Positions 2,812 to 8,700 of a stretch of 64,000 nucleotides of DNA are shown here, one piece after another (within the stretch, counting starts at the first letter, position 1; every line of letters starts with the position of its first letter). Below the pieces are notes generated by a model. The model searched no databases. It was not told the origin of the DNA and saw only the letters and a program-made list of their open reading frames with translations. The stretch is from Oopsacas minuta. Its lineage: Eukaryota; Animalia; Porifera. The translations under genes were made by a program, and so were the position numbers. The DNA lies in contig JAKMXF010000266.1 of NCBI GenBank assembly GCA_024704765.1, positions 124,001 to 188,000 on the forward strand. Reading direction: 5' to 3'.

Positions 2812-2918
2812 CGGATTCCCGTTACTTTGACTCACAAATTAGTTACACACTGCATTCAGCAGAGATCAGTTACTACGTATACTGTAAGGTCAAGCTATAG
2901 CACTAACATATTTATGTA

Positions 2919-3042
2919 CAGTAAACTCTGGTTATAACGAAGTGCTCTGGTCCTAAGATTGATTTCTTTGTAAGCGAAGTAAATCAATTAATTTCAAGCT
3001 ATAGGGGGTAGAGGATCATTTGGTCATAATGGGAGTTTACTG
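2919..3042. mobile_element. Non-autonomous pogo/Tigger-like MITE
   Basis: Perfect 10-bp terminal inverted repeats CAGTAAACTC (2919-2928) and GAGTTTACTG (3033-3042), flanked by TA on both sides (typical Tc1/mariner/pogo target-site duplication). No coding capacity. Confidence 0.7.
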
Positions 3043-3869
3043 TACTTATTCTATTATAATTTAGACTCCTTTAAATGCCTCGAATCTCTGAGAAATATTT
3101 AAGAAAATATATGAGTTTTTTATAACTGGGATTTACTGATTGTAAAAGTGTTTTCTGATTTCATATTTTCGCGTAATTAGGCTCTAGCAAAATCGCCTTT
3201 AAAGAAATTTCTGAAGTTCATTTCACATTCTATCACCCGAATTATCAAACTTGTTGATTTCATAGACGTCGCTATTTGTAACACAACTTATTATAACTAG
3301 CAATTAAATTCATATACTCACATTAATTACTTACATTTGTCAAAGTATCTTGAGTTTTATGGCTCCAGACTCGATAAGAACTTACTCAATGTTAAGTAGT
3401 CGAGTTGTTATGTCCTAATAGCTTCGAAATCATTAGAGACGATATTCAAAGGATTTATTAAAGTTCATGTCCGGGATAAGTAGATTCTTAATAATGAATG
3501 TTATAGAATTACCCAACAACTATTTCCATTCTGACAGCTCGAATTAGCTGACATAATTCCTGACAATTAGCCATTCTTACACATCTTTCCAAGGCTACCC
3601 TATTTGGCTCCAACTTATTTGCTTACCACATGCTGTAAACCATCATTAACCTGATTCATTTCCAATTAGAATTTCATTTGACATAATATGTAGTAAATGC
3701 ATAGGTTTCTGCTGTGTCAAATGTCATTATCTTTCAGTACTCATTTTAGATATTACATACAAATGTAATGAGTTACGATGAACTTAATTCGATAGCAAAA
3801 ATTAACTATCACTCCAGCATTTTATTTCATTCCCTGCTAATCGATTGCACAGGTAATTATTAGATATTA

Positions 3870-5525
3870 ATGGCTCAGTCTAGTCCCTCTGCTGGGGATA
3901 ATATTAAGGATAAATCAATTTATAGCGGTGTGGCAGTTATAATAGTAAACAGCTATATTAATCCCGTATCGAATCAAGCTACTAAACCAGTGAAGAAATT
4001 GCCATCAAATTCTGAAGCGGAAATAAAGTTCACTAGATGGTGTTGCCTGTTCGAGAACTTAGGATTTGCTGTTCTTGGTGATTACTGTATGAAATATTCC
4101 GGTATGCAGCAAGTAATACGAAATCTACAGGATGTTGATTCGCAAAAATTCGCGAGCCTTGTGTTCGTGTTGATAGGTTATTCAAGGAAAGGAAAATTCG
4201 TTTGTGAAGATGGATTAAGATTTGATCTAAACACATTTTATTCCGCTTTTTCTTCAAATCCTTTATCACCCTGGACCAACAAGCCGAAATGTTATTTTGT
4301 TGACACCTTTGATATTCCGAGGTCTTGGTTTTCGCGACTATTCAGCGAGGCAAAAATTTTACCCCTACCACCGCGACAAACAACGAGAGATAAATCCATA
4401 AAACGATCAACTTTCTACTTAGTTATAACGCGGAATGTGCCTTACCGTCAACCTATCGCATCTGATCTCCTGCGAAATGACAAACTAACAGGTATTATTT
4501 TTCGCGAAGCTTCCCAGCTTGGTTGTAAGATATTTGAAAGACTGCATCACTTAGCAGTTGACATTGACATTGAACGTTCAGCATTCACTCCTTCTGACAA
4601 ACCCCCATCGAGTCCATTGCCGGGCAGCGGCAGCCTAACAGGTGATGATATCACTATACGAGACTACTGCGATGGGAAATTCTTTGCTAATATCACTAAG
4701 TCCGTAAAAGGCGTTAATAGTAAACCTAAACTCAATCTAGCCCTCGAGGAAGAGGCACAACCTTGGTTCCATGGTTATCTCACTGTGAGACGAGCTGAGG
4801 AGAGATTGGTAAAGGATGGAGATTGGTTGGTACGATTTAGTCCGTCTTTTGACACATACGGGCTCCCTTTCTTATCAGTCCTACATAAGAATTTTTTCTT
4901 CCATCTCCCCATAAGGGCTTCTCATGGGTTTTACAAGTTAGGTAACGAAACAAAGAGCAAAATATCTCAATTAGTAAATCATTTTTATGAGAAAAATACT
5001 CCATTACGCTCTCACGGTCATGAAATAATTCTCCGTGCATTTAGAGTAAGAACTCTAGATGAATGTAATGATAATGCTTCTGTAGACTTTGATACAGAAA
5101 TGGATTATAAGGTTTTAGACAATTTAATCAATCCTGAGATAGAAGTTTTAAAACAGCCTTGGTTCTATGGATGGGTGGGGTCCGAGCAGATTGGGGAGTT
5201 GTTGAGAGAGGAGGGCACCTTTCTAGTCCGACAAACTCCTTCTGATTCATCTCACTGGGGGAACTTCGTCATCAGCTCATTAAGCTGTGGACAAATACAA
5301 CAAACTCATATACGTTTAACAATTAACGGACAAGTCTATGTAGTTAAAGGAGAAAACTTTCCAACAGTGAGTCATCTTGTAGCCTACCACTTCAATACAC
5401 AGAAACCTATTCCTACTACACAACCTGAAATAAATGTGCTACTACAGCGATACCTTATTAACCCATACTTCCCAGATCCTATGTCACTTCCTTATAAGGA
5501 GTTTAGGTATCCAAGACTGAGTTAA
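3870..5525 (+). CDS. Pseudocaspase-SH2-SH2 protein (inactive caspase-like domain followed by two SH2 domains), intronless
   Basis: 551-aa ORF. aa ~18-150 follow caspase p20 motifs (GVAVIIVN; LFENLGFAV; SLVFVLIGYS; CEDG; NKPKCYFVDTF). SH2-1 starts at aa ~297 (QPWFHG...GDWLVRFS...ISQLVNHFY). SH2-2 starts at aa ~429 (QPWFYG...GTFLVRQT...FPTVSHLVAYHF). Confidence 0.8.
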   Translation: MAQSSPSAGDNIKDKSIYSGVAVIIVNSYINPVSNQATKPVKKLPSNSEAEIKFTRWCCLFENLGFAVLGDYCMKYSGMQQVIRNLQDVDSQKFASLVFVLIGYSRKGKFVCEDGLRFDLNTFYSAFSSNPLSPWTNKPKCYFVDTFDIPRSWFSRLFSEAKILPLPPRQTTRDKSIKRSTFYLVITRNVPYRQPIASDLLRNDKLTGIIFREASQLGCKIFERLHHLAVDIDIERSAFTPSDKPPSSPLPGSGSLTGDDITIRDYCDGKFFANITKSVKGVNSKPKLNLALEEEAQPWFHGYLTVRRAEERLVKDGDWLVRFSPSFDTYGLPFLSVLHKNFFFHLPIRASHGFYKLGNETKSKISQLVNHFYEKNTPLRSHGHEIILRAFRVRTLDECNDNASVDFDTEMDYKVLDNLINPEIEVLKQPWFYGWVGSEQIGELLREEGTFLVRQTPSDSSHWGNFVISSLSCGQIQQTHIRLTINGQVYVVKGENFPTVSHLVAYHFNTQKPIPTTQPEINVLLQRYLINPYFPDPMSLPYKEFRYPRLS

Positions 5526-5717
5526 TGCATCCTGATCACCTACAGATTAATCTCTTATATTTTATTTTAAGATCTATTCACCATAATTAATATCTATTTA
5601 ATCTGGGTCCTTAATTGCTATCTTATTTATCCACAAAATGGCACTCATTAAAGCAATACTTTTATCGGTTACAGAGCACAATTAGGCTATATACGTATTT
5701 AATCAGTTTCAAGAAAC

Positions 5718-8700
5718 ATGCCATCACTCCAAAAGGTTAAAGACCTAATACAGCAGATAAGGGCTTGCAAAACTGCTGCCTTAGAGCGTGATCTTGTAAA
5801 CAAAGAATGTGCCAAAATTCGAGACACACTTTCCTTAGAACACAATGACATCCGTCACATCAACGTAGCCAAGCTCTTGTATATATTCATGTTAGGTTAT
5901 CCAGCACATTTTGGCCAGGTAATTCAATGTTTAGCCAATTACTATACATAATATAATTATGACATATTGTCTAGATGGAGTGTCTCAAGTTAATTTCATC
6001 TAACAGCTTCACTGATAAGAAAATTGGTTATTTAGGATCTTCCTTACTGTTAGACGAGAGACAAGATGTCCATCTTCTACTTACTAATTCAATAAAAAAG
6101 TACGTACGTTTATATACTATTGTAACCCTATGAATATCATTTTAATAGAATTATTCTCTCAAAGTTTATAATACCAATTACAACTTTTTGACTTCTCATA
6201 ATATGAGCGAATCCTTAACCAATGGATACCACATTACCGCCTGTCCTGTGAATTTCGTATAATTGCGCAAATTTGCACATAATATGATTTGTATTTTATG
6301 ATTCTGAGGACATTAGTGTGTAAGATTCTCTTTCACATTTTTCTGAATCTTGCAATTCTTGCACAAAGTGCGCTTCTAGCACATGAAAGTTGGAATAATC
6401 TTCTCTCAGTGCTTCCTCTTTTTTGCGAAATTTATCCATTTTTTCTTCATATGTTTCAATTGATTTTTGCATATTTTCGATTGCAGTTTTTTTAGTTTCA
6501 AACTCTGCTTCAAGCAAGCTAACTTCTCTAGCTAAGTCACTGCGACCTTTTTCCTTAAATTCACTGATTAATACAGATTTTGTATTACGAAACTTAGCTA
6601 GTATTTCATCCAAGAGTTTGTAGTATATGGCCATTGTTTGTTTGTGTTCTAATTCTTTTGTATTTTCTTCTACCGTCAACGCGTCTATTTCATCTCGATA
6701 TCCGTAATGTTCTGCCATTAGCTCATCATGCTGCTTGTCTAGCACGCCGCATTTATTTTTCAAAGTTGCTAATTCTTTGATCGTTTCGAGGTGTTTCTTC
6801 TCAACTTCTTTCCGTTTTTGGAAATTCGTTTGCAATTCAAATTCACGATTAACTCGACGACTGTTTTCTGTGTGAAGTAATCTCTCGTTTCGACCCTTTT
6901 CGGCTTGAATCTCGTTCAAACTCTTGGAAATTAAATCTATATTGAATCCATCACTCGTTTCCATTTTGATATCGTATTCATAAAATTATTAACTTCTAAT
7001 TTAGTGTTTCTTTAAATGATTGTAATTTTACAATTTCTTCTCGAATGAATGTCAGAGATGCGCGCTTGAACGATCAGATAATTAATCAATCTTAAAACTA
7101 GCTATCTTCATCAGACATTACATAAAACTGCTTATATCGTCATAAAACCCAGATTAATACAATTCATACACTCGGCTTCATTTATTATGTAAAATATGTG
7201 GCAGTTTGATTAGTTGTATATCACCAATCTTGGAAGCCAGCGCGGCGTTTACTAATGTGACTTTATCTTAGTCTCTTGCGTCAGTTCAATTTTGGGTGAG
7301 CGAAAATATTGCAATGAATTGTGATGATGTCCACGTATCACCTGATTAAAATATATTAGATCCATTTATTCAAATTTATGGAAGAATACAGTAGGTATTC
7401 TACTGATAGACAAAATCTAGAGAAATTTAATTGTCTAAGAATTTATGTAACAATCTATCCTTTTAGGGAATTTAACCATAGCTCACAGTATGTAGTAGGA
7501 CTGGCGCTTTCAACTCTTGGCTGGTAAGGTTCATATATACTACTGCTTGCTATCCTCTGACGTATTTAACATTTGTACTTTATAGTATTTTGTCAGCAGA
7601 GATGGGGCGGGATTTATCCACAGAAGTTGAGAAACTTTTCAGTCACAAGCACTCCTACGTTAGAAAAAAGGTAATCTGTTCGTTTAATTATCAGAAATAA
7701 TTTGATACTATATATGTTATCTAGGCTGCTCTATGTGCTGTAAGGATTGTATCCAAAGATGGAGATTTGGCTGAGAACTTTAAATCATCAGTTAAAAAGT
7801 TGCTATCAGATCGGAATCATGGTAATGTTCAGTTTGTAGGTCGACAGCGAATATGGTCCTTTTAAGCTCTAATTTTCTGCTTATTCTATTTAAAATTACT
7901 ATAACGATTACCTTAATTGTTCTCCCATAAGTTACACCATATGTTTCTATTAATATTTTACCATTCTATGGAATTGGTAGGATCATTATTGTTTGCATTG
8001 AGAATGTGTAATAATTGCATTGATGGGATTCAAATGTATGGTAACGAGAGTTTAACAAACTTACATACAGAAACAATTGTCAGAATCCACTCATGACTGT
8101 GTAACCTTACGAATTAGGATTAGCTAATTTCAAGTTTTTTTGCAAATTGTTTAACGATATTAATGTGTATAGGTGTTGTTCTTGGTGGTGTTGCACTAGG
8201 CACTGTGATTTGTCAGAAACGTCCTGAATTTCTTGAGGATCTTCGACATAATGTATCCCATCTCGTGAAGCTGATGCGTACACTTCTACAGACAACACAT
8301 GCACCTGATCACGATGTACAAGGTGTTACTGACCCATTCTTACAGGTACTTTTATACTCCTAAATCTGGGTTACGTCATTATATGTATTTCCCATTTGTA
8401 GGTTAATATTCTCACTTTTTTACGAACGCTTGGAAAAGGAGATGAAACGAGTACGGAGTCGATGAATGATATTCTCGCACAAGTAAGTTTATATATGAAA
8501 TTTAATTGAATTTTCCTGTTGCTATTTCCCCAATAATTAGGTAGCTACAAATACAGATTCTGGTAGAAATGTTGGCAATGCAGTGCTTTACGAAACTGTA
8601 AAAACTATAATGGAGATACAAGCTGAGAAGGGCCTTAGGGTAAATTCATAAATATGTATTCTCTTATTATCTCTTTTCATTGGCCAATTCTTAATTGAAT

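Follow-up and report, generated by a model that had tools for sequence, protein, structure and literature searches.

A predicted pseudocaspase joined to two SH2 domains in the sponge Oopsacas minuta

The gene, its orthologues and a three-SH2 paralogue

We analysed a stretch of 64,000 nucleotides from the sponge Oopsacas minuta (GenBank assembly GCA_024704765.1, contig JAKMXF010000266.1, positions 124,001 to 188,000 of the forward strand; referred to here as the window and numbered from its first letter). Near its start lies a gene whose product carries an N-terminal domain homologous to the caspase large subunit, with the catalytic residues replaced, followed by two SH2 domains and a conserved tail (Table 1). 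A moderately probable reading is that the protein is a non-catalytic pseudocaspase adaptor, in which a caspase-fold domain lacking both the His-Cys dyad and the P1 Arg is combined with two SH2 domains that would be recruited by phosphotyrosine. The open reading frame (ORF) agreed exactly with its first description, with 551 amino acids (aa) uninterrupted, and its start site and length were the same in five orthologues. Because an in-frame TAG stands two codons 5' of the ATG, the frame cannot be extended upstream within the exon. The G+C content of the ORF is 0.39-0.42 versus about 0.31-0.33 in the flanks.

Table 1. Coordinates of the pseudocaspase-SH2 gene and its parts in the window
Feature	Position	Strand	Basis
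Complete single-exon coding sequence, 551 aa and TAA stop	3870..5525	+	ORF list
Caspase large-subunit (p20)-like domain, catalytically dead, aa 18-152	3921..4325	+	hhalign, PDB profile, AlphaFold 2, Foldseek, VIA
Asn47, at the place of the P1-Asp-binding Arg in the caspase R-x-G-x-x-x-D stretch	4008..4010	+	HMMER against caspase-2; MAFFT with Pfam-verified caspases
Tyr104, at the place of the catalytic His (caspase S-H-G, here G-Y-S)	4179..4181	+	HMMER, MAFFT and hhalign alignments
Phe147, at the place of the catalytic Cys (caspase Q-A-C, here D-T-F)	4308..4310	+	MAFFT alignment directly
Linker and possible small-subunit (p10)-like half, aa 153-290	4326..4739	+	Low-confidence AlphaFold 2 model, Atlas alignments
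First SH2 domain, aa 296-392, with Arg322 (W-L-V-R) and His345	4755..5045	+	Pfam SH2, PDB match
Second SH2 domain, aa 428-521 (Pfam aa 431-507), with Arg454 (F-L-V-R) and His480	5151..5432	+	Pfam SH2, PDB match
Conserved Tyr-rich C-terminal tail, aa 522-551 (N-P-Y, P-D-P, L-P-Y-K-E-F)	5433..5522	+	Invariant columns, dN/dS

A word-index search retrieved five full-length orthologues of 547-552 aa, and their identities of 60-77% exclude the explanation that they are assembly duplicates of one genome. Synteny was found in five other assemblies, where GTF2H2, an exon of ARMH1 (DUF5578), the pseudocaspase gene and exon 1 of AP-1 gamma adaptin follow one another; a fifth syntenic element, an opposite-strand ORF of about 220 aa, comes after the AP-1 gamma exon. 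Extra copies more than 90% identical occur in other assemblies, all without a given name, and intact ORFs were present in at least seven species. In addition, a distant orthologue with 42% identity was found on a 2,072-bp Logan contig. It contains one intron of 59 nt (GT..AG, L006:1007-1065) within the L-G-C-K motif, and its exons were searched separately (P0007 and L006:1068-2063). The single exon of the original prediction thus held for the window and for the five related assemblies, but not for this distant orthologue, and the comparison of the latter with the window gene and its five close relatives indicates intron gain or loss within the family. The ratio of non-synonymous to synonymous substitution rates (dN/dS, Nei-Gojobori method) was 0.078 for aa 1-240, 0.092 for the first SH2 domain, 0.066 for the second and 0.10 for the tail, with synonymous sites saturated in most pairs; in three unsaturated pairs, the whole-gene ratio was 0.10-0.13. 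The pseudocaspase-SH2 gene is therefore under purifying selection.

One paralogue in the family has three SH2 stretches according to Pfam (E 3e-38). The paralogue P0011 has 658 aa, is encoded by a single exon (L007:5001-6977) and comes from the same assembly as the orthologue P0006; its own orthologues P0016 and P0017 come from the assemblies of P0003 and P0005, so that the two genes co-occur in three assemblies. In all three species, Trp replaces the phosphotyrosine-binding Arg of the middle SH2 domain (F-L-V-W), which is probably a conserved SH2 domain that does not bind phosphotyrosine. In a tree built from every SH2 domain of the two paralogues, the counterparts among the individual domains could not be told (backbone support 41/11), and no kinship to any particular SH2 family was resolved. 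Overall, the family is small and lineage-restricted.

The caspase-like domain and its replaced active site

The original prediction had recognised a series of caspase p20 motifs in aa 18-150, and this resemblance proved to be well above chance by PDB profile search, hhalign, Foldseek and VIA. On the window protein alone, Pfam Peptidase_C14 (PF00656) scored 16.5-18.5 bits over aa 60-146, against a cut-off of 21.4 bits. The 42%-identical orthologue cleared the same cut-off with 23.5 bits, the paralogue P0016 scored 21.1 bits, and 7 of 11 family rows matched Peptidase_C14 (E up to 0.01), which was the only Pfam family matched. When a HMMER profile built from the first 245 residues of the six orthologues was run against all PDB sequences, the 60 matches listed were caspases only; zebrafish caspase-3 was the top match (E 2.9e-4, aa 42-145), and caspase-2 was matched over the same residues (E 3e-3). 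We also ran an exhaustive hmmsearch of the N-domain profile over 1.84 billion representative proteins (E up to 0.001). Ten proteins were returned, two of them clusters of the family itself; the eight others comprised seven strong Pfam caspases (E 2e-14 to 7e-97) and one SH2-bearing paralogue. Furthermore, hhalign of the family against a caspase alignment gave a probability of 98.3% and an E value of 2e-14 over aa 19-152, values that are somewhat inflated because the caspase set was chosen by the family profile. A word-index search with the N-terminal alignment added a single further relative only, and an NCBIfam search of the N-terminal part returned nothing. The profile matches to caspases demonstrate that aa ~18-152 share true homology with the caspase large subunit. 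Among the caspases that best matched the family profile, P0012 and P0015 are short homologues without the catalytic Cys, one of which also lacks the His; annotations may understate how common dead caspases are in environmental data.

Structure prediction was carried out with AlphaFold 2 (AF2). From the six close orthologues, the predicted local distance difference test score (pLDDT) was 43, which made the model unusable; a Foldseek search with it did match caspases, none of them at E 0.001 (best 9e-3). An improved input of 19 rows combined the family and the paralogue with the caspases that the exhaustive search had returned; it gave pLDDT 70-91 for aa 18-150, with the elements in the order beta1, alpha1, beta2, alpha2, beta3, hairpin, alpha3, beta4. 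The predicted model thus has the alpha/beta fold of the large subunit (beta1-alpha1-beta2-alpha2-beta3-alpha3-beta4). Foldseek of this model against the PDB gave 267 matches at E up to 0.001 (best 7e-7), and the best 50 of the 267 were all caspases. VIA alignment against the large subunits of caspase-2 and caspase-8 gave a Z score of 16.4 and a root-mean-square deviation of 2.8-2.9 Å over 133-136 residues. The ESM Atlas's own model matched caspase clusters with template modelling (TM) scores of 0.58-0.63 over aa 13-290, and these clusters included c-FLIP, the vertebrate pseudocaspase that heterodimerises with caspase-8. All Atlas neighbours by sequence features were likewise caspases (score 0.89, 175/256 features). 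Profile and structure searches of the caspase-like domain therefore both led to caspases.

The catalytic His and Cys had originally been read as Tyr and Phe, and the alignments agreed on both; in addition, the P1 Arg of the large subunit is Asn47. For the K-P-K strand just before Phe147, the HMMER and hhalign alignments were in the same register as MAFFT. All three replacements are invariant in the six orthologues. Every family member of type A or type B has Tyr104, and position 147 is aromatic throughout, being Phe in the six orthologues, Trp in the distant orthologue and Tyr in the paralogue. Under a tentative, strand-based register without statistical support, the P1 Arg of the small subunit would correspond to Ile196. 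The protein thus has neither the His-Cys dyad nor the large-subunit P1 Arg of an active caspase. Catalysis in peptidase family C14 rests on the His-Cys dyad, and we know of no caspase that works without it; judged from the aligned sequences, the caspase-fold domain cannot be a caspase-type protease. Because Tyr104 and an aromatic residue at position 147 are common to the orthologues and the paralogue, the site died before the family duplicated, and the new state has been held since.

Other residues might in principle serve a cryptic protease or another enzyme, for example the invariant Cys112, Cys141, Cys219 or His226/His227, and several Cys and His residues are indeed invariant among the six close orthologues. 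However, Cys112 and Cys141 are absent from the paralogue, which has Phe and Val/Ile there, and other residues occupy the positions of the canonical His, Cys and P1 Arg. We regard such an enzyme as very improbable, and a cryptic active protease was rejected for these reasons.

The conservation of the replaced site also bears on what the domain may do instead. Tyr104, Glu113-Asp114-Gly115, Thr146 and the aromatic residue at position 147 are kept family-wide, although the paralogue is only 24-27% identical, and even the distant, 42%-identical orthologue has the stretch after Tyr104 unchanged. This pattern fits a re-used surface rather than simple decay. The remodelled groove (Asn47, Tyr104, Phe147 and the invariant G-Y-S-R-K-G-K-F-x-C-E-D-G) would then hold a peptide or a small ligand, and the protein would be a ligand-binding pseudoenzyme, a three-module reader unrelated to caspase regulation. 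However, conservation would also be expected of structural residues buried in strands beta3 and beta4, and nothing here separates a ligand reader from a protein that acts through dimerisation. We consider the ligand reader rather unlikely and keep the pseudocaspase adaptor as the preferred reading.

We also considered whether the resemblance to caspases is due to chance, or whether the gene is a decaying or unexpressed relic. The sub-threshold Pfam score of the window protein and the pLDDT of 43 in the first AF2 model would fit this, as would the sequencing runs that contain the locus: all five are genomic, with introns and spacers evenly covered and no splice joints seen. In contrast, the hhalign E value of 2e-14, the Z score of 16.4 and the fact that all significant matches in 1.84 billion proteins are caspases or the family itself argue against a chance similarity, and the intact ORFs in at least seven species with a dN/dS of about 0.1 argue against a relic. 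On this evidence, chance similarity and a decaying pseudogene were rejected; we find either one hardly credible.

The possible small subunit, the SH2 domains and the surrounding sequence

Between the large-subunit homologue and the first SH2 domain, aa 153-290 are long enough for a linker and a small subunit, and a p10-like strand had been proposed here originally. AF2 placed a strand at aa 181-187, followed by helices at 206-215 and 220-238, all at pLDDT below 50 and without the beta6 dimer strand; the strand and the two helices follow the order of caspase beta5-alpha4-alpha5. Furthermore, the Atlas alignments with caspases span aa 13-290, with 207-244 residues aligned in one set and 155-178 in another, while the large subunit has ~135. 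Sequence comparison gave no such signal: when the C-terminal half of the N-domain was compared with caspase p10 regions by hhalign, the probability was 0.2%. The equivalent region of the paralogue was colinear with caspase p10 over 86 columns, at a non-significant probability of 1.5% (E 0.034). The proposed strand is thus backed by a low-confidence prediction and by Atlas alignments that reach aa 280-290, but not at the sequence level, and these models make it plausible that the region is compatible with the topology of a p10 half. Asp174, seven residues before the predicted beta5 strand, is nearly invariant and is found in both paralogues, in a part of the alignment that is rich in gaps; as speculation by analogy with c-FLIP, a caspase might cut the inter-subunit linker there.

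Two SH2 domains with the betaB5 Arg, as first proposed, were confirmed. Pfam SH2 (PF00017) matched two stretches with 73.8 bits against a cut-off of 21 (E 1.2e-20). The best solved-structure matches were the N-SH2 domain of SHP-2 for the first domain (E 1.9e-8) and the SH2 domain of Shc for the second (E 6.9e-9); Fes/Fer, ZAP-70 and Syk were further PDB matches. In the alignments with SHP-2 and Shc, Arg322 and Arg454 stand at the betaB5 Arg that binds phosphotyrosine, and His345 and His480 at the betaD4 His. None of the four residues varies among the six orthologues, and the distant orthologue has them too; judged by sequence, both SH2 domains therefore look phosphotyrosine-competent. Apart from SH2, the Pfam search of the window protein matched only DUF7063, which overlaps the SH2 stretches, and Peptidase_C14; no DED, CARD or other death-fold domain was found in that search.

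The tail beyond the second SH2 domain has invariant columns at N531, P532, P535-P537 and S539-E544, and the distant orthologue retains Tyr at the corresponding tail position. The invariant tyrosines in N-P-Y and L-P-Y-K-E-F raise a further alternative, an intramolecular regulator, in which the caspase-like part would fold back against the SH2 pair or the Tyr-rich tail and phosphorylation would open a Shc-like docking adaptor. SHP-2 is held closed by its own N-SH2 domain, and SHP-2 and Shc are the closest solved relatives of the two SH2 domains; the paralogue, moreover, has the same layout plus an extra SH2 domain. On the other hand, this alternative is pure inference, and the 150-residue caspase fold is conserved more strongly than an autoinhibitory lid would seem to require. 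We think such self-regulation quite improbable and return to an adaptor that acts on other proteins.

Several features of the surrounding sequence were also recorded. Only 192 bp (5526-5717) separate the stop codon of the pseudocaspase gene from the ATG of AP-1 gamma, and 17 nt 5' of the pseudocaspase ATG a tract rich in pyrimidines ends in the AG at 3851-3852 (region 3820-3869). This tight spacing and the pyrimidine/AG tract would fit trains of trans-spliced genes. On the opposite strand, an ORF of 222 aa (6296-6964, minus strand) is rich in Glu, Lys and Leu and looks like a coiled coil by eye; it had no Pfam match. Each of the five related assemblies has an ORF of 215-225 aa at the equivalent position, which makes a real gene, nested or neighbouring, probable. 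Upstream of the pseudocaspase gene, a dispersed short repeat occupies 2910-3018. There the summed contig depth rises ~5-8-fold in three runs of this organism and far higher in the run of a relative, and many contigs with differing flanks end within it.

Interpretation and comparison with known systems

In the adaptor reading, the SH2 pair would bind the protein to partners phosphorylated on tyrosine, and a receptor tail or a scaffold with two such phosphorylations is a plausible docking site. The dead caspase-fold module would thereby be carried to the docking site, where it would work by protein-protein contacts instead of cleavage. A more specific version follows c-FLIP: using the caspase dimer interface, the dead domain could bind a second copy of itself or an active caspase, and tyrosine-kinase signalling would thereby raise or lower caspase activation. 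This pairing is drawn by analogy only, because the half that carries the dimer interface could not be modelled, and we think it possible but doubtful. A broader scheme of phosphotyrosine-gated caspase control, in which the two- and three-SH2 dead caspases would gather at a phosphorylated receptor and pair with active caspases, appears unlikely. If it is true, and if an active partner caspase also carried SH2 domains, decoy and enzyme would have a recruitment domain in common, in the way that c-FLIP and caspase-8 both have death-effector domains, and an early-branching animal would possess a route from tyrosine kinases to caspase activation that is independent of death folds. The adaptor interpretation, in which tyrosine-kinase receptors could be coupled to the dimerisation, inhibition or scaffolding of caspases, had already been put forward in the original prediction. 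Its domain content, a dead caspase fold and two phosphotyrosine-competent SH2 domains, is now backed by profiles and structures, while the functional coupling, that is phosphotyrosine-dependent recruitment, interaction with caspases and an effect on cell death, is what we infer.

Five points weigh against this interpretation. The window protein by itself falls under the Pfam gathering score for caspases. The true caspases in the AF2 alignment, although picked by an unbiased search, tilt the model toward a caspase fold. The p10 half, which carries the dimer interface needed by the c-FLIP model, has no detectable sequence similarity to caspases and a pLDDT below 50. The sequencing runs found for the locus are all genomic DNA. 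Finally, the alphaA2 Arg appears to be absent from both SH2 domains by our own reading of the SHP-2 alignment; the N-SH2 domain of SHP-2 presumably lacks it as well.

Caspases are normally assembled by death-fold domains (DED, CARD, PYD), and SH2 domains normally read phosphotyrosine on kinases, phosphatases and adaptors. No account of a fusion between SH2 domains and a caspase or pseudocaspase turned up in literature searches. Nor did the architecture turn out to be a widespread family that had already been described: besides these literature searches, the exhaustive search found only the family, caspases and the SH2-bearing paralogue, although its dead-domain profile would miss SH2 fusions with ordinary, distant caspases. 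The protein is best regarded as a pseudocaspase adaptor with SH2 domains in place of death-fold recruitment domains. The fusion suggests that an early-branching animal lineage wired tyrosine-kinase signalling straight to a caspase scaffold. The family also offers a clean natural case of a pseudoenzyme under selection, in which activity was lost before duplication and the replacements have been fixed since, and it makes testable what role a caspase fold that is unable to cut may have. The significance is limited by the confinement of the family to one poorly studied group, and SH2 domains have often been shuffled within particular lineages, both of animals and of their unicellular relatives.

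Among known systems, the long form of c-FLIP (CFLAR) is similar in that a caspase fold without the catalytic Cys and His is joined to recruitment domains, and the c-FLIP cluster was among the nearest Atlas structure matches (TM score by query 0.59, aa 13-280). However, c-FLIP has two N-terminal death-effector domains, whereas the protein described here has two C-terminal SH2 domains, and its recruitment is proposed to depend on phosphotyrosine rather than on death folds. Orthology to c-FLIP is not implied, as the sequence matches are to caspases in general. In C. elegans, CSP-2 and CSP-3 are inactive caspase homologues that bind and inhibit CED-3. They share with the sponge protein the status of a catalytically inactive caspase homologue, but they are short, carry no signalling domains and have no link to phosphotyrosine. 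SHP-2/SHP-1 and Syk/ZAP-70 provide the parallel for the other half of the molecule, since they too combine tandem SH2 domains with one effector; here, 132 residues lie between the W-F motif of one SH2 domain and that of the next. The SHP and Syk/ZAP-70 proteins have an active phosphatase or kinase as effector on the C-terminal side of the SH2 pair, whereas the effector of the sponge protein is a dead caspase fold on the N-terminal side. A further counterpart is the three-SH2 paralogue (P0011, P0016, P0017), which has the same layout, the same dead site (Tyr at the His position; Thr and then an aromatic residue at the Cys position) and a single exon. It differs in its length of about 655 aa, in its third SH2 domain and in its caspase-like part, where the identity is 24-27%.

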